Virus record (IMG/VR): IMGVR_UViG_3300042540_001399
Location: 124,001-188,000 of that record
Strand: one strand, 5' to 3'
DNA: 64,000 nt
Below the pieces are notes generated by a model that was not told where the DNA came from, ran no database searches, and saw only the letters and a list, made by a program, of their open reading frames with translations. The position numbers were made by a program, and so were the translations under genes. Shown piece after piece: positions 42,234 through 57,886 of the stretch. Position 1 is the first letter of the stretch. Each line of letters starts with the position of its first letter.

Positions 42234-42281
42234 AAAATGGTTTACTATCTATTGTTAGATATAAACAATAAAATTAAAAAA

Positions 42282-43847
42282 ATGAAACAAATTTATCTAA
42301 CAATTTTTTCTGTAATGATGACAGTTTTGTCTTATTCACAGAATTCTTTTTGGACACCTACAACATACAGAGGTGCTTTTCCTATAACAGATAACACACC
42401 ACAAACAGATTGGACTCATGGTTGGTCTAATTGGGATCCACAAAATACACAGTACCCAACAACTCAATTGGTAATTAATACTGATGTAACTACTGATGCA
42501 ACTTGGTCAGGTGTTATAAAATTACAAAACAAAGTTTATATTAAAAATGGTGCAACACTTACAATACTTCCAGGAACTATAATTAGAGGTGATTACAATA
42601 GTCAAGGAACTCTAATTGTAACAAGAGGATCAAAAATTATTGCTGATGGAAATGTGAACCAACCAATCGTCTTTACCTCAAACAATCCTGTCGGAAGTAG
42701 AAACGAAGGAGATTGGGGAGGTTTAGTTCTTTTGGGGCATGCCATTAATAATCAACCTGGTGGTGTTGTTAACATAGAAGGATTACCACCATCTACAAAC
42801 ACTCAACATGGAGGAGGTAATGATAATGATAACTCAGGAGTGTTAAGATATGTAAGAATCGAATTTGCAGGAATTCCACTTGAACCAAACAAAGAAATTA
42901 ACGGATTAACATTCGGTTCAGTTGGAAGTTTAACTACAGTGGATTATGTACAAGTAAGTTTCTGTGGAGACGACTCGTTTGAGTGGTTCGGAGGAACGGT
43001 AAACTGTAAACATTTAATTTCATATTCAACAATAGATGACGATTTTGATACTGACTTTGGATACAGAGGTAAGGTTCAATTCGGTTTGGCGATTAGAAAT
43101 GAAAATTTGTCAGACGCAGCGGGCGACTCAAATTGTTTCGAATCGGATAATGACGCACAGGGTAGCGCTTCTCAACCATTGACGGCACCTATTTTTTCTA
43201 ACTTCACGATTATTGGGGCTAAGGGTGATGGGACTGTAATTCTTCCAGTGGGTGAAAAATTTGAAAAAGCTTTCAGATTAAGAAGAAATACTGCAACTTC
43301 TGTTTTCAACTCAATTGCGACAGGATGGGAAAAAGGATTATCTTTAGAGGGTGTTCCTGTTGAAAATAACATAACTTCAGGTGTTATGAACTTTAATAGT
43401 AACATACTTTCAAACTTTAATACTGGGACAGTTTGTTATACAACAACACCAAACTTTCTTTCATCTTATTTTTCTCAAAACTTGAATGACTCAACTTTAA
43501 CGAATCAAGACATCAATTGGGTTAACCCATTTGTTCAAATAGGATCAACACCTGATTTTAGATTGAATGGGTTCTCGTTTGCGGCAATTGGTGCCAACTT
43601 CCCTTTAAACATATTTGGAAATATTGCGTCAGTCGATGAACTTAATAATGGGTACACAATTTATCCTAACCCGGCAACCAATCAAATTACGGTTAATGAA
43701 AAAACTAATATCGAAGTTATGGATCAAAACGGGAAATTATTAGTAAGTTCTTTTGATAATCAAGTTGAATTGATAAATCTACCAAATGGAGTTTATTTTG
43801 TTAGACTAAACAACTCCAAGGTTGAAAAGTTAATAATTAGAAAATGA
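42282..43847 (+). CDS. Secreted beta-helix-like protein with T9SS (Por) C-terminal sorting domain
   Basis: Signal peptide; GDWGGLVLLG, DNSGVLRYVRIEFAG and DDSFEWFGG; C-terminal IYPNPA...GVYFVRL...KLIIRK. Confidence 0.85.
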   Translation: MKQIYLTIFSVMMTVLSYSQNSFWTPTTYRGAFPITDNTPQTDWTHGWSNWDPQNTQYPTTQLVINTDVTTDATWSGVIKLQNKVYIKNGATLTILPGTIIRGDYNSQGTLIVTRGSKIIADGNVNQPIVFTSNNPVGSRNEGDWGGLVLLGHAINNQPGGVVNIEGLPPSTNTQHGGGNDNDNSGVLRYVRIEFAGIPLEPNKEINGLTFGSVGSLTTVDYVQVSFCGDDSFEWFGGTVNCKHLISYSTIDDDFDTDFGYRGKVQFGLAIRNENLSDAAGDSNCFESDNDAQGSASQPLTAPIFSNFTIIGAKGDGTVILPVGEKFEKAFRLRRNTATSVFNSIATGWEKGLSLEGVPVENNITSGVMNFNSNILSNFNTGTVCYTTTPNFLSSYFSQNLNDSTLTNQDINWVNPFVQIGSTPDFRLNGFSFAAIGANFPLNIFGNIASVDELNNGYTIYPNPATNQITVNEKTNIEVMDQNGKLLVSSFDNQVELINLPNGVYFVRLNNSKVEKLIIRK

Positions 43848-44599: not shown

Positions 44600-44693
44600 T
44601 ATAGTTTTAGAATAACACTAAAATATAGAAATCCCCACCAAAAAAGTGGGGATTTTTCTTTTTTATATCATTTACATTTACTATATTTTGTAT

Positions 44694-45011
44694 ATGTTAA
44701 GACACCAAAACCCAATTCAGATCAATTCTACAACAACAGGATTTGCTTCACCAGCGGAAACATACGTTGACAAACGATTAGATCTAAATGACTTGATTGT
44801 GAAAGATCACTACACAACATTTTATTTTAGATATTCAGGACCATCAGTCTTTGGAATCAATCAAGGTGATACAATAGTAATTGATCGAACTGAGAATCCA
44901 AAAGATGGGGATTTGGTAATCTTAACTGATAAGAATCATTTCAAACTTCGAGAGTTCAAAGGACAAAAAAACTTATGGGGAAAAGTAACATGGGTATTAA
45001 AGAAAATGTAA
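44694..45011 (+). CDS. umuD: UmuD-like (S24) protein, short and degenerate
   Basis: GFASPA...LDLNDL...SGPS...GDTIVIDR; directly upstream of umuC; start moved to 44694. Confidence 0.8.
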   Translation: MLRHQNPIQINSTTTGFASPAETYVDKRLDLNDLIVKDHYTTFYFRYSGPSVFGINQGDTIVIDRTENPKDGDLVILTDKNHFKLREFKGQKNLWGKVTWVLKKM

Positions 45012-46207
45012 AAAAGATTGGAATAATTGATTGTAACAACTTCTATGTTAGTTGTGAAAGATTATTTAATCCTGAATCTATTGGAAGACCAACCGTTGTA
45101 TTATCAAACAATGACGGATGTGTAATTGCCAGATCACAAGAAGCAAAAGACCTTGGAATTAAAATGGGGGAACCATTCTTTAAGAGTCGAGAGTTCATGG
45201 ACCAACATAGATTTTGTGTATACTCATCAAACTACAACCTGTATGGTGATATGTCAGATAGGGTTATGAAAGTAATCTCGGAGTTTGGAAATGATATTGA
45301 GGTATATTCAATTGATGAAGCGTTTGTTGATTTTTCAAACATACCTTTAGAAGATCTCACAGAAACATTAATAGCAATTAAAGAAGAAGTTAGAAAGAAA
45401 GTTGGAATTCCTGTATCAATTGGTGTTGGCCCAAACAAAACTTTAGCTAAACTAACATCCTTTTTAGCTAAACAACAGCTAAACTATAATGGTGTATGTT
45501 CATATTGGGACTTACCAAACTTTAGAAATATGTCTTATGGGATTAATGTTGATGAGGTTTGGGGTATTGGTAGAAAGTGGGCAAAAAAACTAAAAAACAT
45601 TGGGGTAGAATCAGTAGGTCAGTTTATTAACACAAACGAATATACTGTTAGAAAGTTGATGAATATCAATGGAGTAAAAACTCAATTGGAGTTAAAAGAA
45701 ATGTATTGTTTTTTAATTCAAAAGAAGTCCAAACCAAAAAAAAATATTGCATCTACTCGTTCTTTTGGAAAAGATGTACAGGACTTTGATCAACTGGGTG
45801 AAGCGATGTATACATACATTAAAAACGGTGTGAAGAAATTAAGTCAAAACAAGTTGTTTGCAAATAAAGTAACTATATTTGTTTCAGGAAATTATCATAA
45901 AGGTGATAAGTATTACCATTCTAAAACAATCAAACTTCAAAATCCAACTAGAGATCCTGACCTTATTTGGTCACAGATTCACGAACAATATAAAGTTCTT
46001 TGTGACAAATCTGAAAAGTATAAAAAGTGTGGAATAGTATTTAATGAACTTACTCCTGATACAATTATCCAAACTTCTTTATTTAGTGACGATGTTAAAG
46101 TTGTAAACGCCCCACAGAATGAAAACCATGAGTGGGAAATGAAACAAGACTATATTACTCAAAAGTACACAACATCATGGAATGAGTTACCACTTGTTTT
46201 TGTTTGA
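44990..46207 (+). CDS. umuC: Y-family DNA polymerase V catalytic subunit
   Basis: DCNNFYVSCER, SNNDGC, YSIDEAF and STRSFG; C-terminal YTTSWNEL. Confidence 0.93.
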   Translation: MGIKENVKKIGIIDCNNFYVSCERLFNPESIGRPTVVLSNNDGCVIARSQEAKDLGIKMGEPFFKSREFMDQHRFCVYSSNYNLYGDMSDRVMKVISEFGNDIEVYSIDEAFVDFSNIPLEDLTETLIAIKEEVRKKVGIPVSIGVGPNKTLAKLTSFLAKQQLNYNGVCSYWDLPNFRNMSYGINVDEVWGIGRKWAKKLKNIGVESVGQFINTNEYTVRKLMNINGVKTQLELKEMYCFLIQKKSKPKKNIASTRSFGKDVQDFDQLGEAMYTYIKNGVKKLSQNKLFANKVTIFVSGNYHKGDKYYHSKTIKLQNPTRDPDLIWSQIHEQYKVLCDKSEKYKKCGIVFNELTPDTIIQTSLFSDDVKVVNAPQNENHEWEMKQDYITQKYTTSWNELPLVFV

Positions 46208-47166: not shown

Positions 47167-47416
47167 TTTTTGAAACATTCTTGTTTTTTAATTTTTTATT
47201 CTTATCTTTGTCAAACTTATGGAAACACAATTTGAAGATTTAGAAAAAAAAATACGTGAAAAATTTGCTGAAAGACAAAAAAATGTCCCTAGAGTTGTTG
47301 ACCGTTATTTAAGAATCAAATTCAAACAAAAACTTAAACAGTTTACAGGAATAAAACTGAAATAACAAAACCCCACCATCTTGTGGGGTTTTTTATTTAC
47401 TCTAATATTTATCATT

Positions 47417-48304
47417 ATGGGATTAAATGAATCAATATATAGAATAATTAGAGAAGAAACTGAAACCGATAAAAATATTGATGGTGGTAAATTAAAAGTT
47501 TGTTCTCGTAACCCAATTACAGGTTTTTATAGAGATGGATACTGTAGAACAGGTGATGATGATAAAGGTAGTCACACGGTATGTTCTAAGGTGACAAAAG
47601 AATTTCTTAAATTTACAAAGTCACAGGGAAATAATCTTGATATGTTACAACCTGGTGACAAGTGGTGTTTGTGTGCAAAAAGATGGGAAGAAGCAAATGA
47701 AAATGGGGTAGCTCCAAAAATTATCAGAAGTTCCACCAATATTAAAACTTTAGATATTATTAATAGTGTAGACGAAGAATTGGATGAATATGCAAGAACC
47801 TTAAAAAATGCTAGAAGACAAGGTGTTGGTATAAGATTTCCACAATCCGCAATCAAAAGTAATCCAAGTAGATTTAGACCTTCAGTTAGAAAATCAATTT
47901 CAGAAATCTACGACAACTTTAGCTTATTAAGAAGATTAAATAGATCAATTGATGACACAACGATAAAAAGGTTAGTAAAACAAAAAATGTATGACCTTGA
48001 ACCCACTGAATATAATTCCAAATATGGTTACGCGGATGATGTTATTTTTTATGTTACTGATGAATTTATCAAACCTTCAGATGATCCACAATACAGTAAA
48101 ATTTACGATATTTTATACGAATATATTAGAATGAATTTTTCTAATATCATTTATAATTATTGGACGGAAAATCAGTTGGAAAATGATGACGAGTTATATG
48201 AAAACAAAGAAATAACAGAAAGATGTTGGAAGGGATACACTCAAAAAGGTATGAAAACTATGTTTGGTAAAAAGTATCCTAATTGTGTAAAAATAAAGAA
48301 ATGA
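47417..48304 (+). CDS. Modular protein: leader, DUF2237, basic peptide, LRR-motif helical module and CWKGY peptide
   Basis: TGFYRDGYC...HTVC...PGDKWCLCA; C-terminal RCWKGY...PNCVK; start moved to 47417. Confidence 0.75.
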   Translation: MGLNESIYRIIREETETDKNIDGGKLKVCSRNPITGFYRDGYCRTGDDDKGSHTVCSKVTKEFLKFTKSQGNNLDMLQPGDKWCLCAKRWEEANENGVAPKIIRSSTNIKTLDIINSVDEELDEYARTLKNARRQGVGIRFPQSAIKSNPSRFRPSVRKSISEIYDNFSLLRRLNRSIDDTTIKRLVKQKMYDLEPTEYNSKYGYADDVIFYVTDEFIKPSDDPQYSKIYDILYEYIRMNFSNIIYNYWTENQLENDDELYENKEITERCWKGYTQKGMKTMFGKKYPNCVKIKK

Positions 48305-48305
48305 A

Positions 48306-48716
48306 ATGAACCTACAAGAAAACATACAAAGAATCAAAGAAATGATGAAAATAAATCATTCATTTTTGAACGAATCGCAAAGTTTAGGAGTTACCAAAAT
48401 TTTGGGTAGACCATTCCAATTAGTTAAAACTGAAGTACCTTACAAATTTGAAATCCAAGATAACAAAAATGACATGATTAAAATGCAAATAACCGCACCT
48501 AATGGTTCTTTTATTAATATAGATGAAGTTGACCATGTTTTGGAAGAAACTGACGGTGGTGGAAAAAAATTGATTGGTTATAATTTCAAGGGTAAGAGCG
48601 GAACTGTAAAGTTGATAGATGTTCCAAATGTTAAAAGAATTATTGAGTTTGTTGATAATTCAGAAAAAAAATCAATAACAATTTCTTTTGTGACATTCGA
48701 AAAAGTACTTGAATAA
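48306..48716 (+). CDS. MNLQE-leader hypothetical protein
   Basis: Leader repeat followed by an unrelated body. Confidence 0.7.
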   Translation: MNLQENIQRIKEMMKINHSFLNESQSLGVTKILGRPFQLVKTEVPYKFEIQDNKNDMIKMQITAPNGSFINIDEVDHVLEETDGGGKKLIGYNFKGKSGTVKLIDVPNVKRIIEFVDNSEKKSITISFVTFEKVLE

Positions 48717-49198
48717 TGAACCTACAAGAAAACATACAAAGGATAAAAGAAATGATGGGAATAATAGTTGAAAATTACTATGACCCAAAAAAGTTGTATG
48801 TTGACATGGGTGGAGTTTTATTCAAAAAAATGGGTGCCGATGAAGGTGGATCAGGTAATGAAACTGATTATATAGGGAGCGAATTATGGGAAAGTATTAA
48901 AAAATATTACCCAATAATTCTTACTTCCACAGGATCCAAAAATATAGAAAATTCAGAAAAAATAAAAACCAAACAAGTTCAAGACTATTTAAACCCAATT
49001 CCAAAAATTGAATTTGTTGTCTTTGGGGCTGATAAAAAAACTTTTGCCACCACAACTCAAGACGATTTAGTTTATCCAAATATTTTAATAGATGATTCTG
49101 AAACAAACATAAACGGATGGGTAAACAATGGAGGTATTGGAATACTTCATAAAAATAATCAAACAACTTTGGAACAATTAAAAAGTTATATCAAATGA
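48716..49198 (+). CDS. MNLQE-leader HAD/5'(3')-deoxyribonucleotidase-like protein
   Basis: LYVDMGGV, ILTS, KK and ILIDD...GGIGILH. Confidence 0.7.
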   Translation: MNLQENIQRIKEMMGIIVENYYDPKKLYVDMGGVLFKKMGADEGGSGNETDYIGSELWESIKKYYPIILTSTGSKNIENSEKIKTKQVQDYLNPIPKIEFVVFGADKKTFATTTQDDLVYPNILIDDSETNINGWVNNGGIGILHKNNQTTLEQLKSYIK

Positions 49199-49950
49199 AC
49201 CTACAAGAAAACATACCGGTACATATAAAAAGAAGAATTCATTTAATTGATAAGGTAATAGATAATTTGTTACCCAATATGTATCCGTGTGATTATAATT
49301 CTTATGACCATTTTGTGGAAGGAGTATTAGATGAAATTAGATGGTTTTTAATTGATGTAGAAGAATTACAACGTATTGAAAGATCGGATATTGAAAACTA
49401 CATTCTTGATTACAAATATGATGAATTAACTGAATACTTCAATGAAAGGTGTATTGTTTTAAAAAATGATAAACTACAAGAAAACATAAGAAGACTTTCA
49501 AGAGAAAATTCACTAAAGAATGATTTGATGAATCTAATTGATAATGTTGGTTTAAAAAAAGCGTCAAAGGCTGTGGGAGGGATGGTTAGATTATTAAAAA
49601 TATTAGATCTTGATCAACAAGAAATTAATAATTTTATTTACCAGTATCTAAAAGAAGAGTTTTATCCTGATTATAATTGGGGACCTGAAATACATGATTT
49701 TTATAAAAAAGAAATTGAACAGTATGGTATATATGATTTTTTGATTAATGATGATCCGGCATATTCATATTTAGGTGAGTGGGATGGATATGAATATCTA
49801 TACACACTATCAATTGGTAAACTTGTCAGGGATGAACTTACAAAACTGTTTGGGGATAAGTGGATTCCAATTTTTAAGAAATGGTTTGAAGAAAACTCAG
49901 GTCTTGAAGTAAGAGAAATAGACTTAAATAATAAATTTTTAGTGTATTGA
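49195..49950 (+). CDS. MNLQE-leader two-module protein (RR/YPC module and KAVGG module)
   Basis: Internal second leader KLQENIRRLSRE. Confidence 0.7.
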   Translation: MNLQENIPVHIKRRIHLIDKVIDNLLPNMYPCDYNSYDHFVEGVLDEIRWFLIDVEELQRIERSDIENYILDYKYDELTEYFNERCIVLKNDKLQENIRRLSRENSLKNDLMNLIDNVGLKKASKAVGGMVRLLKILDLDQQEINNFIYQYLKEEFYPDYNWGPEIHDFYKKEIEQYGIYDFLINDDPAYSYLGEWDGYEYLYTLSIGKLVRDELTKLFGDKWIPIFKKWFEENSGLEVREIDLNNKFLVY

Positions 49951-50297
49951 TTGAGGTGAACAAAAAAGAATTTATAAAAAGACTATTAAGGGAAAATAAT
50001 TCAAATCCAATTAATCCAATTTTAAGAAGATTGGATGTCGTTGATTGGTTGGTTGAGTTTTCAGTAAGAGAAATAGAAAGACAATATAATGGTATATGTA
50101 AAGTAAGAACCCCTGAAAACTTTTTGGAAATTGTAATAGAAAAGACTGGGGATGGAATGTATTGGGATTATTTTTCTGACACACTAGATGATGATTCAGA
50201 AGAGTGGGCGGAAATGTATAGATTCATATCCATATATGTGTATAATAAATTTGGTGATAAGTTAAGAGAACATTTTCACACACAGTGTGGAGATTAA
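49947..50297 (+). CDS. LRR-motif helical module protein
   Basis: NPILRRLD...C...C; exact start uncertain. Confidence 0.6.
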   Translation: MIEVNKKEFIKRLLRENNSNPINPILRRLDVVDWLVEFSVREIERQYNGICKVRTPENFLEIVIEKTGDGMYWDYFSDTLDDDSEEWAEMYRFISIYVYNKFGDKLREHFHTQCGD

Positions 50298-50311
50298 CAT
50301 AATTATATAAT

Positions 50312-51094
50312 ATGAACCTACAGGAAAACATATTAAGAATTAAACAAATGATGGGACTTGTTACAGAAGTTACTAATCCATACAAAGTTGAATGGTTGGA
50401 ACCTACACAAGAATACTTTACACAAGAGTTAAGTGAGTTATTGGGCAATCCTATTAGGTTTACAGACAAAGAGTTTTTCAACCCTGAAAACTATGATACG
50501 GTTTATAACATTATGCCACACACATTCAAAACGATTGCTGAATTTTCTAAAGGTGAATATGTGGAAGGCGAAGATAAAATTAAGGACATACTTCTAAATC
50601 AAAATATAATATCTCTTTTAAAAGAAGAAGAAAGATGGAATGAATTGAAAAACATTTTAATGAATGACCCGCAATCAATCCAAGAAGGTTATGATTTCTT
50701 CAGTCGTGGTCAAATGACGATATGGAAAGGAACTAACCCTGAAACAGGTGAACATATTGATAATGTAAACAACACTGATTACATGGGTGAATTAACAAGT
50801 TTTCTTGAACCATTAAAAAAAACCGTATCTTCCAAAATGTCATCACATTTGAAAAAAGTTGGTGACGGAGAAGGTAATAAAGATTTACACGCTTTTGCAG
50901 GAAACATCGACCAATATAGAGAATTTGCAAAGAAAAGTGAAACAAGAAAATTACCAGCACCATTTGTTGTTAAATACTACACAAAGAAAAATGATAAAGA
51001 TTATGTTTTAATAGGTGGATTCAAAAGAAGTTCAATCGCATTACAAATGGGTATTGAACCAATAAAAGTTTGGTTAATAGATTTAACAATATGA
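50312..51094 (+). CDS. MNLQE-leader protein with C-terminal ParB/Srx-like motif
   Basis: LPAPFV...LIGGFKRSSIA. Confidence 0.55.
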   Translation: MNLQENILRIKQMMGLVTEVTNPYKVEWLEPTQEYFTQELSELLGNPIRFTDKEFFNPENYDTVYNIMPHTFKTIAEFSKGEYVEGEDKIKDILLNQNIISLLKEEERWNELKNILMNDPQSIQEGYDFFSRGQMTIWKGTNPETGEHIDNVNNTDYMGELTSFLEPLKKTVSSKMSSHLKKVGDGEGNKDLHAFAGNIDQYREFAKKSETRKLPAPFVVKYYTKKNDKDYVLIGGFKRSSIALQMGIEPIKVWLIDLTI

Positions 51095-51840
51095 ACCTAC
51101 AAGAAAACATACAAAGGATTAAACAAATGATGGGGATCATTAACGAGAATATAGATGATGTTCTTGACAAAATGAGCCGAGGTGAAGAATTGTCACAGGA
51201 AGATAAAAATAAAATGTCAGTATTTCAAAAACATCTTTTTTCAGGAAAAAAAGAAAATGATTTCAAATATCACAGAGTATCTGAGTTAAATATTGCAGAA
51301 CCTAATTCAGAAAATCATGTAAATGAATCACAAATTCTTGTACACTACGATTCTAATACTAATATCAAACCAGAATACATGGTAAAAAAAATTGCACTTA
51401 TTTTAAATAAATCAAACATTGATTGTGTAGTTGGGTATTCTTTTAGATTGTTTACATTTGCCAATGGGTATTTTGTTAAGGTAAATGAGTACCAAGTCGA
51501 AAACGCAATTTATGTTTTGAATAAAAACGGGTTTAGTACGGAAATGAATCCAATGTATGATCTTTCAAATAACTATGACACAAAAAGTAACCGAGAAGAA
51601 AAACTACAAAACTTTTCTGAAAATTCAGATATAATAATTTTGAGTGACTCTGAAATTTATCAAAATTTAAATCTTACTGATACACAATTTAATGATAGAT
51701 TAGAAAAACTGTTAAAAAAATTTGGTATAAATAACTTCTTTATAACAAAAAATAAAATAACCATTTCTGATAAATCAAAAATTGACGATGTGATTAATTA
51801 TTTGAATACCAAAGGATACAACACAAGAAGATCAAGATAA
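51091..51840 (+). CDS. MNLQE-leader hypothetical protein
   Basis: True start at 51091 (ATGA overlap with previous stop). Confidence 0.7.
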   Translation: MNLQENIQRIKQMMGIINENIDDVLDKMSRGEELSQEDKNKMSVFQKHLFSGKKENDFKYHRVSELNIAEPNSENHVNESQILVHYDSNTNIKPEYMVKKIALILNKSNIDCVVGYSFRLFTFANGYFVKVNEYQVENAIYVLNKNGFSTEMNPMYDLSNNYDTKSNREEKLQNFSENSDIIILSDSEIYQNLNLTDTQFNDRLEKLLKKFGINNFFITKNKITISDKSKIDDVINYLNTKGYNTRRSR

Positions 51841-51841
51841 T

Positions 51842-52249
51842 ATGAATTTACAAGAAAACATATCAAGGATTAAACAAATGATGGGACTTCTTACAGAAGG
51901 ACTTCATGACACATATTGGCAAAATGAAGATGGTGACAAAATAACTCTAATTGATTTATTAAATGCAACACAAGACATACCTGTAGAAGAATTTTCCGTA
52001 GAAGAATTAAAACCGCATCTATTAACTTGGGATGGGGATGAAGATGAGGTTAAAAAAATAGAAAGTGCCAATTTACAATACCCAATATTAATATTCGTAA
52101 ATGACGATGGTGAATTTATATCAATTATAGATGGTCATCACCGAGCACAAAAAGCGGTGAGAAAAGGGTTAGAAACAATTAAGGCGAAGGTAATACCAAT
52201 TAATTCTTTACCTAAAAACATAAGAAGAGTATTTTCACATATGAACTAA
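51842..52249 (+). CDS. MNLQE-leader ParB/Sulfiredoxin-like protein
   Basis: ANLQYPILI...IIDGHHRAQKA. Confidence 0.8.
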   Translation: MNLQENISRIKQMMGLLTEGLHDTYWQNEDGDKITLIDLLNATQDIPVEEFSVEELKPHLLTWDGDEDEVKKIESANLQYPILIFVNDDGEFISIIDGHHRAQKAVRKGLETIKAKVIPINSLPKNIRRVFSHMN

Positions 52250-52250
52250 T

Positions 52251-53531
52251 ATGAACCTACAAGAATCCATAAGAAGAATATTAAGGGAAGATTTGTTAAA
52301 TAAATCAAAATTCTTTCTAAGAAGAATTAATTTAGATGAGGTTAAAAAATTACTTCCAATCAACGCAGAACAAGTACATGGTGAAACAAAAAGTTATGAG
52401 CAATTCAAGTATGAATTAACTTTAAGAGCCGTGGAGGCAATTATGTGGAATGATTATGAACTCGGGTGGGAAGATCTACCAGAACAAGAGGAAATAGAAT
52501 TTGTTAATGAAGTTTCCAACATGTTTAATAAAACAATCAAAAAGTTATATAATTCTTATAGTGGAAGAATATTAAGGGAAGAAGATTATTCTCCGGCGGG
52601 TAAAGAAATAATACCAAATAAAATTGTGATCCACAAGTCCAATCCGATCTTCAGAAATAAGATAATGGAAAATGGTCTTAAAGTAAGGGCAGGAGAATGT
52701 TACAAAATATATGTTGGTTATGGTGTTAAGTGTAAACCTGCAATTTTTGCAACCAACTCAACGAACAAAAGAGCATGGTTTGATTCAACATACGACGATG
52801 ATATATGGGAAATAAATACAGAAATGATTCCTGATGTAAAGTGGTATAAAGATAGACACTTTGAGTCAAGGTCAAAACATATTGTTACGTTTCAAGACAT
52901 ACCAAAAGAAGCAATAACTTTAAAATATGAAGGAAGTGGAAGTGGAGATGTAGAAAAGTGGGATAAAGATTCGCCAAACATAGTTAGAGAATCCCAAATA
53001 GACCCTTATCTTCTAAGAAGATTTCATGAGTTCGACGACACTTTCAAATTGGTATCATCAAATGTTTATCCATGTGATTTCAGACATCCACAACATTATT
53101 GGAATTACACGATAGAAAGAGTACTGGAAGCTATTTATTTTAATTTTTTCTATGAAACTAAATCCGAATTAAATTGGGAGTCCCTTTCTGATGAAATTCT
53201 TTATCTTCTAAATAGAACATATTATGATGAATTAGTTTCAGACTGGGAATCCAAGTGTAATAATAATATTCATGAAGATTTTTCACCTGAGTTTTTAAGA
53301 AGAATAACTATAATTGATACGTTAATTGACGCAACCCTTTCTTCTATGTACCCATGTGAATATAGTTCTGAAAAAGCTTTTCTTCGTGGTTTATACGACG
53401 AATTATATTGGTCATTTATAGGGGAAGACTTAAAAATTATTGACTATTCAGATATTATTGATTTTATAGAAGAAAACAGAAAAGAAGACATATATGATTA
53501 TTGGGACGAATATTGTGTTCGATTATCATAA
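52251..53531 (+). CDS. Four-module protein: LRR module, ADP-ribosyltransferase-like domain, two more LRR modules
   Basis: VIHKS...IMENGL...IFAT...DIPKEAI; modules separated by ILREE, VRE and IHE. Confidence 0.6.
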   Translation: MNLQESIRRILREDLLNKSKFFLRRINLDEVKKLLPINAEQVHGETKSYEQFKYELTLRAVEAIMWNDYELGWEDLPEQEEIEFVNEVSNMFNKTIKKLYNSYSGRILREEDYSPAGKEIIPNKIVIHKSNPIFRNKIMENGLKVRAGECYKIYVGYGVKCKPAIFATNSTNKRAWFDSTYDDDIWEINTEMIPDVKWYKDRHFESRSKHIVTFQDIPKEAITLKYEGSGSGDVEKWDKDSPNIVRESQIDPYLLRRFHEFDDTFKLVSSNVYPCDFRHPQHYWNYTIERVLEAIYFNFFYETKSELNWESLSDEILYLLNRTYYDELVSDWESKCNNNIHEDFSPEFLRRITIIDTLIDATLSSMYPCEYSSEKAFLRGLYDELYWSFIGEDLKIIDYSDIIDFIEENRKEDIYDYWDEYCVRLS

Positions 53532-53532
53532 T

Positions 53533-53610
53533 TAACTATGGTTTTCAATTACTCGGTTCATAGTCCTTCACTTCGTTCGGAATTCACCTCATAATTTAAT
53601 ACCATAGTTA
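53533..53610 (-). other. Hairpin with three tandem G.A pairs and a C-GAA-G triloop
   Basis: Minus strand: TAACTATGGT...GA-GGT-GA-AT-TCC-GA-AC-GAA-GT-GA-A-GGA-CT-AT-GA-ACC-GA...ACCATAGTTA. Confidence 0.7.
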
Positions 53611-53650
53611 TATTTATTATACATAAAGGATAACAAATCAAAAGACAACA

Positions 53651-53974
53651 ATGTCACTTAAAAAAATAATTAGAAAAGTATTGATTCAAGAATCGGGAAA
53701 CATAGATCCTTACATACTTCGAAGACTTGATTTAGATAAGTTCAATGATCTCTTAGATAAAGGAAAAGTATATATGTTTTATGAATCCAATTCATTAGAA
53801 GAATTCAAATGGAAGTTAGTTACGGCAACATTAGAAAACTATCATTACTACAAGTATGAAACTGATATAGATACAAGTGATGGATATTTCGATCAAACAA
53901 TACAAAGTCTTATCAACTTATTTGAGCCCAAGTTAGAAACTATTTATAACAGATTAAAAAATGAAAGAGGATGA
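53651..53974 (+). CDS. Leader plus LRR-motif module
   Basis: KKIIRKVLIQE; IDPYILRRLD. Confidence 0.65.
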   Translation: MSLKKIIRKVLIQESGNIDPYILRRLDLDKFNDLLDKGKVYMFYESNSLEEFKWKLVTATLENYHYYKYETDIDTSDGYFDQTIQSLINLFEPKLETIYNRLKNERG

Positions 53975-54594
53975 ACAAACAATTAAATCCATTTTTGTTA
54001 CGTAGAGTTGATCCTAAAGTGTTAGACGCCGAATTTGAGGATTGTTTAGATACTGCCACAAACATGTACAACAGGGGAAAAGACAAAAGTTCGGTATCAT
54101 TACCTCAGTTTAGAAATAGAGTCATATCCATGTTGATAGACTCAATTCACTATGATATACATAGCTCTGTTCCAGAAGAACTTCAGTGGTATGATGATGT
54201 CTTTTATATGTTAAAAGATTATTATGGGGGTAAGATTAAAAAAAGATTAGATCAATTAAATTCCAAAACTATAAATGAATCCAAGTTACAAATTTATATG
54301 TTAAGAAGAATAGATGTTGTTGAACATTACCTTAACAATTTAAGTTCAAAAGATGTTTGTATACACTGGTCAGACGATGAGGCTTTAGAATATTCTAGTC
54401 AAATACTTTCAGACATGTCAAGAATTATTATTGATGAACTACACTATGTTGATTCAGAATCATATGTAGACAAGTATGATGAAATATATCAATTTTTAAT
54501 TGATCTTGATTATCCGAAAAGAATAGTAGACTTCTTTTATGATTCATTAAAAACTTGTGAAGATAGACATAGATATAAATTTAGAAAACCATAA
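53971..54594 (+). CDS. Two LRR-motif modules
   Basis: NPFLLRRVD and INE-SKLQIYMLRRID. Confidence 0.65.
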   Translation: MNKQLNPFLLRRVDPKVLDAEFEDCLDTATNMYNRGKDKSSVSLPQFRNRVISMLIDSIHYDIHSSVPEELQWYDDVFYMLKDYYGGKIKKRLDQLNSKTINESKLQIYMLRRIDVVEHYLNNLSSKDVCIHWSDDEALEYSSQILSDMSRIIIDELHYVDSESYVDKYDEIYQFLIDLDYPKRIVDFFYDSLKTCEDRHRYKFRKP

Positions 54595-54676
54595 AATAAT
54601 ATAACACATTCACTCATTACAAAGGGGACCTCAATCGGTTCCCTTTTTCATTCACTCATATGTTATACTATTTTAT
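54591..54676 (-). other. Second tandem G.A hairpin
   Basis: 19-bp outer stem (two G.T); ATGAGTGAAT paired with ATGAGTGAAT; inner AAAGGG/CCCTTT and ACC/GGT. Confidence 0.7.
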
Positions 54677-55796
54677 AAAACTATAATCCCCCCATTTAGT
54701 TAAGTCCTAATATATTGTCCCCCCATTTAAGTTGACCAATGATTACACATTTTGCGTAACACATTTTGTATAATGTTATGGTACAACTATCAAGACAACT
54801 TTGTACCAAAGTTATATTTTAGTGTTGTACTTGTATTATATTTTGGTGTGGTGATTAGTTACTAAATGAATGTGTATATGAAAAGGGTATAAACATACCC
54901 ACTTATTACCACTTATTAGAAGTTATTACCACTTTACTATGTGTTATTAGTTGTGTAGATTTTAGTGGTCAGGATGTTGAAAAACCCACTAAAGTGGTCG
55001 TTGAAGTTATCTATTTAATGATCTATAAGTGATCTACTAACGACATAAATGTCTGTCCACGGCAACAGTACCATTAATATATGTTTTTCGCTGGAGAATA
55101 GACATAGTGAAAAAAGTGGTTCTGTAGGGGTCAAGAAGGGGGATTTTTTAGGTCTGTAGATAGCAACAGGTACAATTTCGGTGGTAGAAAGTGGGAAGTA
55201 TAGAGTGGGGAAAAGTGGTAGAAAACCCGTAAAGAGATTGTGTCGTGTGTAACGCTCGACTGACATTTTGACAAAAACAAGTTTTTTAACATAATTATTT
55301 ATTAACAATTCCCCCTGGTGATGGAGATATTAAAAGTTTTCAACAAAGTAATTGACAAAAGTGGTGATACCATAACCCTGACATATTGTCACCAAAACTA
55401 TTCTGGTACATGTGTGTATAAAGAACATAACTTGGTTGGTAAAAATAAACCTATCAGACAAAGGTTCTACACCCTTGAGTCATCAGACATGGGGGATGTA
55501 TTAGAATATCTATTTACACAGGGACATATTAAAGATGGGGACTTCAATACCATTGGTCCCCAACTACAAGACTATTCATTAGGTCTTATATATGATCATC
55601 CATTTGATCAATAATATAACGACGAATAAAGTTAGTTATATTTGACGTGGGGAAGTAGTCCAAAAAGAAAGCACACACTGTAAGACCAAACAGAAATAAC
55701 AACGTGATTACAACATAGACCATAAGAAACATTTCCATAACAGAATAATAACACACACCATTCACCTTTTCAAGATCATTAGTATATTTATTATTA

Positions 55797-55920
55797 GAAG
55801 TTCATTTTCCCCACAGTAGGGAATTAGTTGTTCAAGACCCAGGCGGTCTGTAAAGTTCAAGATGAAGTTGACAACATAATTTTCTTAAGGATCCCTATTC
55901 GGTGATGGGGAATTTTTTAT
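55797..55920 (+). ncRNA. Candidate structured late sRNA
   Basis: TATTTAT at 55785; stems TTCCC/GGGAA, AATTAGTTG-TCAA/TTGA-CAAC-TAATT and AGACC/GGTCT; terminal hairpin with T tract. Confidence 0.4.
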
Positions 55921-56010
55921 GCTCCCTTATTTTTTTTATAAGGCATCCTGCCTCTGATTGAGCTCCACGGGTTGTTCCCCCGAGCCCGACTTAACCTTAT
56001 CATCAGTGTC
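55921..56010 (-). ncRNA. Candidate structured sRNA behind a host-sigma promoter
   Basis: TACCTTTG on the minus strand at 56015-56022; stems CTGAT/ATCAG, GGGCTC/GAGCTC, GGG/CCC and GGCA/TGCC. Confidence 0.45.
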
Positions 56011-56347
56011 AATACAAAGGTACGGGATTAATTTGACACTACCAAATTTTCCCCCATGTTTATTTGATCAAAAGTTATTAACACCACTATAGTCGTTTAC
56101 TAAGTTATCAACATGACAGTGTGTCACATGGGGGACCAATAGAGTTTGGCATACCCCTACCATAGGGGGATCCACAAGAATTACCCCCTCCCCCCTCCCG
56201 TATGCCCCCTTATATGACATATTGTCAGGGGAAAAAGGGGGGTCAATCCCAAATATAACATATTCGTAAAAAAAATTCTGGAAAAATTTTTGGGAAAATT
56301 TGGAAACTATACTATCCCATATTATACAGTAAAGTATATTTATCAAT

Positions 56348-56653
56348 ATGGAAGAAGGTTTAAGATGGTTTTTAAGAAGAACAAATGATCCTGAAATAAT
56401 AAATCACATCGAGGAACTTGTGGAAGAGGGTTTTGATTATGAAGACGTTTGTGATTACATCGGTAGGAAAAGAGAATATGTTAGGGAAATAGTTCGTGGG
56501 TCAACTATTACTTTTATAAATTCTTATGATGGATTAGATAAACTAAATGAGTCAAGTGTGTTAAGGATTTATAATTTTATTATGTCCAGATTTCTTGAGT
56601 TAATTACGGACCATTATGACTCTAATATCGAAGATTGTGATGGATTCTTATAA
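56348..56653 (+). CDS. LRR-motif module protein
   Basis: WFLRRTND...VCDY...EDC; TATTTAT at 56337. Confidence 0.65.
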   Translation: MEEGLRWFLRRTNDPEIINHIEELVEEGFDYEDVCDYIGRKREYVREIVRGSTITFINSYDGLDKLNESSVLRIYNFIMSRFLELITDHYDSNIEDCDGFL

Positions 56654-56715
56654 TGTGTAAAGTAAAACCCTTACAATCTGTAAAGTGAAACCCTTATAAT
56701 CTGTAAAGTCGACCC
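56647..56715 (+). repeat. Three tandem 23-bp repeats
   Basis: CTTAYAATSTGTAAAGTnnAcCC; TGTAAAGT at 56656, 56679 and 56702. Confidence 0.85.
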
Positions 56716-57526: not shown

Positions 57527-57636
57527 AAATTAATAAAAATAGAAACCCTACCTCATCGGTGGGGTTTTTTGTTATTGACAGTAGTATTTATTTTTGTTAA
57601 TATTATTTAACAAATAAACTTATAATTTAACTTACC

Positions 57637-57807: not shown

Positions 57808-57886
57808 AAAATAATTTATAATCTGTGAATTATTTATCCCCCACTTTTATCGGTGGGGTTTTTTGTTTTACATTATATTTATTGAT

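Follow-up and report, generated by a model that had tools for sequence, protein, structure and literature searches.

We analyzed a stretch of 64,000 nucleotides, referred to as the window below, which covers positions 124,001 to 188,000 of the IMG/VR virus record IMGVR_UViG_3300042540_001399. Between positions 48306 and 53531 of the window, eight consecutive genes form a tandem array of cassettes, in which short, related leader sequences at the gene starts are fused to unrelated bodies. The source of the sequence is an uncultured freshwater jumbo phage of ~290 kb with ~30% G+C, and the locus is a hyperplastic accessory-gene array. The window also has ~30% G+C and carries nearly all of its genes on one strand, including genes for an RNA ligase (with best matches to uncultured huge phages), a thymidylate synthase, a UvrC-like protein, a UmuD/UmuC-like pair, phosphoesterases, and an endolysin-like protein. 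It is 100% identical to three IMG/VR contigs of 274–291 kb, one of them IMGVR_UViG_3300042939_000736, and the agreement of three independent assemblies indicates that the array is stable in the short term.

The 15-mer ATGAACCTACARGAA occurs without mismatch at positions 48306, 48716, 49195, 50312, 51091, and 52251, and the copy at 51842, which uses the codons AAT TTA, is a variant with two mismatches. Allowing up to two mismatches, the window contains eight matches compared to 0.57 expected (none of 100 shuffled sequences reached eight), and every match coincides with the ATG of a plus-strand open reading frame (ORF). An earlier note, made from the sequence of the window, had stated that seven of eight consecutive genes share the leader. 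The 15-mer scan confirmed this, and the eighth gene (49947), which has no 15-mer, carries a degenerate leader, VNKKEFIKRLLREN, whose DNA is 76% identical to the leader at 52252–52301. In an alignment of the array starts, two leader types were distinguished. Type A, in the window MNLQENIxRIK(E/Q)MMG followed by [LIV]xxE, is found on the genes at 48306, 48716, 50312, 51091, and 51842, and type B, in the window MNLQESIRRILRED, heads the gene at 52251; the degenerate leader of the eighth gene is also of type B. The ORF at 49195 retains only MNLQENI. Leader remnants were also detected within ORFs (KLQENIRRLSREN at 49471–49509 and GRILREE at 52563–52583), and the gene directly upstream of the array (47417–48304) opens with a related leader, MGLNESIYRIIREE.

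Six of the seven leader copies in the array use the codons AAC-CTA-CAA-GAA-AAC/TCC-ATA. In the entire window AAC accounts for 28% of the Asn codons, CTA for 8% of the Leu codons, and ATA for 35% of the Ile codons, so that the reported retention of AAC-CTA in six copies despite the AT bias holds. The same applies to the near-identity and abrupt divergence of the genes at 50312 and 51842, as positions 50307–50369 and 51837–51899 share 90% identity across 63 nt and are divergent beyond. Adjacent genes abut or overlap at the stop codon, as had been noted, with the junctions TGA-A-ATG at 48304/48306, TAATG at 48716, and ATGA at 49195 and 51091, and with gaps of one base at 51840/51842 and 52249/52251. 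The earlier description of the array was thus correct and, if anything, understated. The array and its borders comprise the following features, all on the plus strand:

47367..47392, +, terminator-like hairpin (10-bp stem with 5 G-C pairs, then a T run) closing the preceding transcription unit
47406..47419, +, promoter-like TATTTAT, 4 nt 5′ of an ATG, likely the start of a near-leaderless transcript spanning the array (based on motif counts)
47417..48304, +, first gene of the unit: type-B-like leader MGLNESIYRIIREE (47417–47458), DUF2237, a middle domain, and a C-terminal tail module CWKGY...PNCV (48224–48301)
48306..48716, +, cassette 1: leader A (48306 to ~48374) and an ORFan body, 136 amino acids (aa)
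48716..49198, +, cassette 2: leader A (48716–48772) and a 5′(3′)-deoxyribonucleotidase-like body (phrog_2643, E = 1.2e-15)
49195..49950, +, fused cassettes: short leader (49195–49215), LRRxD/MYPCDY-type domain, leader-B remnant KLQENIRRLSREN (49471–49509), and a second body
49947..50297, +, cassette with TTG start: degenerate type-B leader VNKKEFIKRLLREN and an LRRLD domain
50312..51094, +, cassette: leader A (50312–50368) and an ORFan body, 260 aa
51091..51840, +, cassette: leader A (51091–51147) and an ORFan body, 249 aa
51842..52249, +, cassette: leader A variant AAT-TTA (51842–51898) and a ParB/sulfiredoxin-fold body
52251..53531, +, four cassettes in one 426-aa ORF: leader B (52251–52292) and internal leader ends GRILREE (52563–52583), NIVRE.. 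(52977–53021), and NNIHE.. (53262–53303)
53533..53625, +, intergenic stem-loop (53533–53610, z = −2.4), then the promoter-like motif TATATTTAT (from 53609): a terminator/promoter-type unit ending the array
53651..54594, +, two more small genes of the LRRxD-domain family, the first with a B′-type leader MSLKKIIRKVLIQE

The heptamer TATTTAT is located 3–7 nt 5′ of an ATG at 20 sites in the window compared to 4.6 expected, nearly all of them gene starts (including 1020, 6469, 16722, 27796, 36879, 39441, 46213, 47406, 56337, 57876, and 60257), and it was present at −13 to −11 in 75 of 314 leader genes. This arrangement suggests near-leaderless transcripts, and TATTTAT is probably the −10-like promoter element of the phage. 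It often lies 3′ of terminator hairpins (44627–44657, 47367–47392, 57541–57569, and 57839–57858), and these pairs are, judged by their sequence, terminator-promoter units similar to the promoter(early)-stem-loop (PeSL) elements of T4-type phages. The unit that ends the array at 53533–53625 is 79–84% conserved in the unrelated contigs L001, L013, L054, and L057 (numbers preceded by L denote the contigs and loci used for comparison). Between 47420 and 53600, no TATTTAT was found before an ATG, and the next such site is at 53609. With a promoter-like unit before 47417 and none until 53609, the array looks like a single operon of translationally coupled genes, and we predict that the cassettes lack promoters of their own and are read from one upstream promoter.

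Distribution and conservation of the leader

The exact leader 21-mer was retrieved from 69 stretches of IMG/VR contigs, many of them 50–300 kb long, and altogether the leader is present in hundreds of uncultured viral contigs, where it precedes at least 88 unrelated bodies. Across this clade, the type A peptide is MNLQENIxRIKxMMG[LIV]xE and the type B peptide is MNLQESIRRILREE. The 253 unique leader proteins of at least 90 aa fell into 88 body clusters, and the recognizable body domains were ART-PolyVal, HD, shikimate-kinase-like or AAA kinases, PG_binding_1, ParB/Srx, deoxyribonucleotidase, and DUF2237. In 185,579 bacterial and archaeal genomes the leader pattern had 12 matches, of which one, on a 3.3-kb contig of a metagenome-assembled genome, was genuine. 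Neither a tblastn search of three leader peptides against 50,697 GenBank phage records nor a megablast search of the 12-kb locus against GenBank phages gave a match. No entry of Pfam, PHROGs, NCBIfam, or PADLOC matched the leader and few matched the bodies, the ESM Atlas returned only unnamed viral clusters for the leader, and a full-text literature search with leader peptide strings yielded nothing relevant. A word-indexed protein search limited to the leader region listed 114 candidates, in which matches to the leader alone had non-significant E-values, and was useful solely as a list of body domains. According to these sequence searches, the leader is a virus-specific feature that occurs clade-wide in uncultured phages.

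Among 97 unique A leaders, codons 9, 10, and 15 vary at the third position only, and overall variability decreases from the third to the first to the second codon position. Variation confined to third positions indicates that the leader is translated and under selection at the amino acid level. The residues L3, E5, I7, R9, I10, M14, and G15 are near-invariant, and L3, I7, I10, and M14 form a heptad-like pattern. A true start at the internal ATG-ATG (M13/M14) was considered and rejected on two grounds, the periodicity across codon positions and the lack of an internal Met in type B. The leader helix is amphipathic. In an AlphaFold2 model of the ParB-like cassette, residues 3–14 form a helix, residues 15–20 are disordered (pLDDT <50 at 18–20), and the body (pLDDT ~90) matches sulfiredoxin/ParB folds. 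In the model, the leader is thus a free helix of 12 residues, which a disordered linker connects to a body that folds on its own. Homologues of the ParB-like body in cultured phages align only from residue 14–30 onward and hence are without the leader.

The motif [LIVM]-x-E closes 72 of 84 unique A leaders, at residues 17–19; the ending is ILRE-E in type B and [LI]-x-E in the further leader types B′, C, D, and E (described below). At the sequence level, this ending is a motif of the type recognized by the T4 prohead protease. Since the leader is conserved, translated, distributed clade-wide, and interchangeable on the same body (see below), a function at the protein level, which had not been part of the earlier interpretation, appears very likely.

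The leader is in part also conserved as DNA. Synonymous codon choice was assessed in 110 leaders from loci that had been fetched via an unrelated protein anchor and that are, therefore, unbiased with respect to leader DNA. In codons 2–7 of these leaders, AAC made up 80% of the Asn codons (background 30%), CTA 67% of the Leu codons (background 9%), and ATA 95% of the Ile codons (background 34%). From codon 9 on synonymous choice was near background, and the nucleotide-level conservation is limited to approximately the first 21 nt. A general codon bias of gene 5′ ends was rejected as the cause, because the starts of non-leader genes show only a weak codon shift. Furthermore, where the window and its relatives encode the same amino acid, codon identity was 0.76 in leaders and 0.62 in orthologous bodies (p = 2e-4). 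Both the use of rare codons and the comparison of synonymous identity agree with the proposal of the earlier note that leader DNA is more conserved than expected from protein constraint and codon bias. Other contigs carry AAC-TTA-CAA-GAG and the copy at 51842 in the window carries AAT-TTA, so the rare-codon block is not an absolute requirement. The leader RNA is A/C-rich and unstructured (minimum free energy per 60 nt, −0.8 to −3.6 kcal/mol). Since it folded no better than shuffled controls, we rejected the possibility that the leader contains a structured RNA element or an attC-like hairpin.

Cassette shuffling at the leaders

In all fetched loci together, 18.3% of the internal homology-block endpoints (n = 4817) fell within −10 to +60 of a leader start, a region that comprises 1.4% of the bases. 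This corresponds to a 13-fold enrichment at leaders, compared to 1.8-fold at other gene starts. The 5′ boundaries of the blocks cluster at the ATG, and the 3′ boundaries cluster at the end of the next leader. A particularly clear case is the pair L030 and L180, which are 92–95% identical. An additional cassette (359 bp) and a 1.68-kb block of four further cassettes are present in L180, both of them flanked by direct leader repeats of 40–55 nt, whereas L030 has a single, partly mosaic leader at each site. These clean insertions and deletions and the endpoint statistics agree with the breakpoints inside the leader that the earlier note had predicted. Gene content and order are not fixed either, since the surroundings of the orthologous DUF2237 gene differ in every relative examined. 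Elsewhere, pieces of the array recur in a different order or setting, and their BLAST matches are bounded by the leaders, internal remnants included.

The same body can also be joined to different leaders. The ParB-like body, which starts with GLHDTSW, has leader A in the window and in six relatives, and it has leader D and the C-terminal tail in L147, where the junction lies directly after VINE. The leader on DUF2237 orthologues is of type A in L180, of type B in L175 and L178, and B-like in others. Module 8b was found with leader A in L007, with leader B in L180, and inside the ORF at 52251 in the window. Modules 8a and 8b of this ORF are separate leader genes in L048, L007, L180, and other contigs. 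Likewise, the ORF at 49195 joins two cassettes, each of which is a gene of its own in L174, L061, and L062, its second body being a separate leader-B gene in relatives (L174, 16428–16907, 70% identity).

We consider it likely that homologous recombination between leader repeats drives this shuffling, much as in PeSL-mediated shuffling in T4-type phages but with a coding repeat taking the place of the intergenic one. General homologous recombination between repeats of 40–60 nt would excise, insert, delete, and reorder cassettes, and new domains may in this way be captured already tagged. The extra conservation of codons 2–7 would then reflect both recombination and a role of the start region in near-leaderless or translationally coupled mRNAs. 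The comparison with an integron in the earlier note did not extend beyond analogy. There was no sign of site-specific recombination, the cassette junctions contain no attC-type hairpins (folding was no better than for shuffled sequences), and the repeats are direct and not inverted. Searches of Pfam, PHROGs, and NCBIfam with individually scanned array ORFs and flanking genes gave no match to a recombinase, and no integrase was present among the 25 listed of the 41 PHROG families matched by the other 74 ORFs of the window. PeSL-mediated shuffling in T4 and the leader of T4 internal proteins are, as analogies, better precedents than the integron.

Orphan leaders, which are ORFs of 11–22 codons consisting of a leader and a stop codon, were observed in L016, L021, L042, L045, L054, and L061. 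Such ORFs were probably left behind where cassettes recombined or decayed at a leader joint.

Possible functions of the leader

Our preferred interpretation of the locus as a whole is that it encodes a propeptide similar to the capsid targeting sequence (CTS) of phage T4, whose coding DNA doubles as a recombination joint; we assign this reading a probability of roughly 0.45. According to this model, the protein would attach to the prohead core through its amphipathic propeptide, a prohead protease of the gp21 type would remove the leader at [LIV]-x-E, and a changing set of effectors would be packaged and injected together with the DNA. In T4, gp21 removes capsid targeting sequences of 10–20 residues from internal proteins, Alt, and gp24 (PMC5694885), and the internal proteins are a diverse anti-restriction set that has only the targeting sequence in common (PMC3012670). 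In the T4 record, ipII and ipIII both begin with MKTYQEFIAE, are identical at 30 of 30 nt, and then diverge; gp24 begins with MAKINELLRE, and the endings are I-A-E (ipII/ipIII) and L-R-E (gp24). Leader-bearing contigs of the clade contain distant but clear homologues of T4 gp23, gp20, gp21, gp17, and gp18 (the protease in L128 and L156), and one 287-kb contig bears both leader genes (L047) and a T4-like major capsid protein (MCP) (L273). A gp21-like protease was found in 77 of 80 MCP loci of the clade, which were the best 80 of more than 600 and did not include the window's own contig. Moreover, the ART-PolyVal and ParB/Srx domain families have been described in phage-packaged, injected proteins (PMC5512222), and bodies of these families are thus typical of injected effectors.

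Several observations weigh against the capsid-targeting model. Leader genes are rare inside the head module (14 of ~1180 ORFs). The motif [LIV]-x-E has a low information content and the residue after it is not conserved, and the leader shares with the T4 sequence MKTYQEFIAE only the pattern hydrophobic-Q-E-x-I and no significant similarity. The number of tagged proteins is large, with leader-type N-termini on ~10% of the ORFs in the sampled loci and, as counted by eye, on ~28 of 42 genes at 31–62 kb of the window versus ~2 in its first 31 kb. Metabolic-looking bodies are tagged too (a nucleotidase, P-loop kinases, DUF2237, a likely pterin dehydratase, and a VanY/endolysin-like protein with a type-E leader), and they can hardly all be regarded as capsid cargo. 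At the DNA level, strong gene conversion was tested as the sole cause of the rare codons, and codon concordance among leaders was only slightly higher within loci than between loci (0.795 vs 0.728). Given this small within-genome excess, some of the nucleotide conservation extends over the whole clade and may serve a function instead of resulting from recombination. Considering these points, we regard the assignment of the leader to address tags of the T4 CTS kind as tentative, with a likelihood somewhat short of even.

Alternatively, the leader could be an address or docking tag for another destination, such as a replication factory or compartment, a hub or chaperone, or a protease for timed degradation, with recombination proceeding as outlined above. 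A free amphipathic helix with a linker and the exchange of several leader types on one body would fit this equally well, and the tagging of so many proteins, several of them apparently metabolic, would even be better explained by a general sorting or regulatory signal than by capsid cargo. The scarcity of leader genes in the head module points the same way. However, neither a partner nor a compartment gene or dedicated protease was identified, and a destination other than the capsid leaves unexplained why every leader type ends in [LIV]-x-E and why this ending fits the specificity of the T4-like protease of the clade, and we consider such a tag rather unlikely. Still less probable is that the leader acts at the nucleic acid level as an expression module, namely as the part of near-leaderless or translationally coupled mRNAs that is transcribed and translated first, in a host without Shine-Dalgarno-based initiation, with the peptide as a tolerated by-product. 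The overrepresentation of TATTTAT before ATG codons, the confinement of nucleotide conservation to the first ~21 nt of an unstructured leader RNA, the ATGA/TAATG gene overlaps, and a hint at a Bacteroidota host (see below) are in line with this possibility. An RNA signal would not, however, conserve residues 8–19 as amino acids in a heptad-like pattern while leaving third positions free, non-leader genes with the same promoter motif lack the leader codons, and functional copies replace AAC-CTA with AAT-TTA or with AAC-TTA..GAG.

That the leader has no function of its own and hitch-hikes with the cassettes as a neutral or selfish homology block, in other words as a recombination scar, is very improbable. 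Breakpoints and indels do occur at the leaders and orphan leaders without bodies exist, but L3, E5, I7, R9, I10, M14, and G15 remain near-invariant while the bodies are 50–80% identical or unrelated, and the substitutions follow the pattern seen in coding DNA on which purifying selection acts. Finally, tandem, co-oriented, and abutting genes with common starts could be ordinary diverged paralogues, in which only the N-terminus is still recognizable, or an assembly artefact. Both explanations were rejected and deserve next to no credence: the bodies have different folds (ParB/Srx, HAD-type nucleotidase, P-loop kinases, ART, HD, and DUF2237), their homologues in cultured phages lack the leader, and three independent contigs contain the array at 100% identity, with the leader itself present in more than 150 contigs.

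The capsid-targeting model has its closest counterpart in T4 itself, where a CTS is found on IPI, IPII, IPIII, Alt, and gp24. Both systems combine a short N-terminal peptide with otherwise unrelated, hypervariable accessory proteins, identical leader DNA occurs between the paralogues ipII and ipIII, the peptides end in (L/I)-x-E (the gp21 site in T4), and relatives of the phage studied here possess a gp21-like protease within a T4-like head module. The tagged T4 proteins are injected anti-defence effectors (PMC3012670, PMC5694885). In contrast to T4, the leader described here has an unrelated sequence and 13–19 instead of 10 aa, dozens of genes per genome with at least 88 body families are tagged compared to ~6–8 in T4, the cassettes are tandem, overlapping, and sometimes fused, and there are several interchangeable leader types and a mobile C-terminal tail; packaging and cleavage of the leader proteins are putative.

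PeSL elements of T4-type phages mediate recombination between short repeats that flank non-essential ORFs (Arbiol et al. 2010, PMC2839356; Comeau et al. 2014, PMC4122927). They resemble the system in the window with regard to short repeats in hyperplastic regions, insertions, deletions, and replacements between close relatives, and the apparent lack of a dedicated recombinase, and terminator-plus-promoter units also border the array. The PeSL repeat is an intergenic promoter/terminator, whereas the repeat of the array is the first 40–60 nt of each gene, which are coding and unstructured. A common N-terminal propeptide in a jumbo phage context is further known from the ejection proteins gp53 and gp54 of SPN3US and gp93 of phiKZ, in which the N-terminal 15 residues are identical, the rest has diverged to 34% identity, and prohead-protease motifs are present (PMC5694885). 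The ejection proteins are true paralogues, have long propeptides, and contain A/S-x-E motifs, whereas the bodies in the array are unrelated and the leader family is far larger. For the polyvalent proteins of phages and conjugative elements (Iyer et al. 2017, PMC5512222), as for the leader proteins, a role as early effectors delivered with the DNA has been proposed. The two groups have in common the ART-PolyVal, ParB/Srx, and peptidoglycan-directed domains and the occurrence of multi-domain fusions (426 aa for the ORF in the window, 548 to 1057 aa for those in relatives). In the array, however, mostly separate small genes each have a leader, and no MuF or metallopeptidase packaging domain was seen.

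Similar to integron arrays, the cassettes are co-oriented, are apparently promoter-less and read from one upstream promoter, and vary in content between relatives. They differ in that no integrase was present among the proteins scanned and no attC hairpins were found, and in that a 5′ coding repeat adds a peptide and exchange would be homology-based. Encapsulation peptides of microcompartments and cargo-loading peptides of encapsulins also send unrelated enzymes into a protein shell by means of an amphipathic helix of ~15–18 residues and a flexible linker. These peptides serve cellular shells, are not removed by proteolysis, and have no role in recombination, and the leader resembles them in form only. 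For the leader family itself, for the combination of at least 88 unrelated bodies with several interchangeable leader types and a tail module, for a coding repeat as recombination joint, and for the tandem fused architecture we found no described equivalent. Precedents for the principle are the T4 targeting sequence on hypervariable internal proteins, PeSL shuffling, and the shared propeptides of SPN3US gp53 and gp54.

If the leader is indeed an address tag, it would provide a sequence handle on the injected or sorted effector repertoire of a large group of uncultured jumbo phages, which consists mostly of ORFans and likely includes host-takeover and anti-defence proteins. The coding repeat would then be both protein address and recombination joint and would extend the CTS and PeSL concepts to a plug-and-play architecture at the genome scale. 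Being short and portable, the leader might also serve to load such capsids with foreign proteins, an application for which the T4 targeting sequence has already been used. Even without a packaging function, the array is a clean natural case of modular shuffling, fusion, and fission at defined coding joints, and the leader joints mark where relatives gain, lose, fuse, and reshuffle accessory genes.

Further leader types and neighboring features

Besides types A and B, the window contains the N-terminal leader types B′ (MKxLIRxILKEE), C (MELNRFKQLLESxLGxVxPLISE), D (MKKIIRLTESDLxRIVKRVIxE), and E (MKIIITESQL), with MELNRFKQLLES..PLISE as the type C and MKRIVRLTESDLARIVRRVIRE as the type D sequence. 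Genes with these leader types start at the following positions:

40718, 56813, 60624, 6482, 16733, 31466, 31963, 34812, 36892, 57887, 58215, 59401, 61455, 37260, 37883, 38431, 46225, 53651: genes with leader types B′/C/D/E

The C-terminal module CWxGY..G.K...GK..PNCV, which is Lys-rich and has two Cys, ends the DUF2237 gene of the window (48224–48301) and many unrelated proteins in relatives (112 ORFs, 57 unique), including the ParB-like body in L147 (5608–6138, minus strand). It had no match in Pfam. Where an ORF with this module has an adjacent gene, a leader is present on that gene every second time. One could speculate that the interchangeable N-terminal leader types A, B, B′, C, D, and E form a small code, which together with the mobile tail would constitute a general phage protein-sorting system and direct at least 10% of the ORFs to a common destination (the capsid interior or an intracellular structure) in a large clade of T4-related freshwater jumbo phages. 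The tag DNA would then be the equivalent of attC in an integrase-free cassette system, in which captured domains are instantly expressed, addressed, and exchangeable. We consider this wider scenario doubtful.

In the relative L124, the gene directly 3′ of the T4-like major capsid gene (1493–2419) encodes a protein of 308 aa that is rich in Gln/Ala and has a type-D/E leader with the ending IIEE; by its sequence this protein is a candidate for a leader-bearing head-internal protein. A repeated small domain, x(L/F)LRR(L/I/V)D, often followed by MYPCDY, was observed at 49222, 50019, 52311, 53010, 53292, 53714, 53995, 54298, 56363, and 60290. It occurs both in single genes and as repeats inside fused ORFs and had no match in Pfam.

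Upstream of the array, positions 42237–43847 encode a 536-aa protein with a signal-peptide-like N-terminus and a C-terminal sorting domain of the type IX secretion system (E = 6.5e-12), which hints at a Bacteroidota host. A UmuD-like gene followed by a gene for a Y-family polymerase of the UmuC/DinB type (44694–46207) forms a pair of the SOS-mutagenesis type. Downstream of the array, the region 54600–56350 contains few convincing ORFs, yet it is 73–77% conserved in many relatives (BLASTN). An Rfam scan gave no match in the window, the ORF-poor stretch at 54600–56350 included. This conserved stretch could be a non-coding RNA or a regulatory region, and it is followed by three tandem 23-nt repeats similar to CTTATAATGTGTAAAGTAAAACC (56647–56715).

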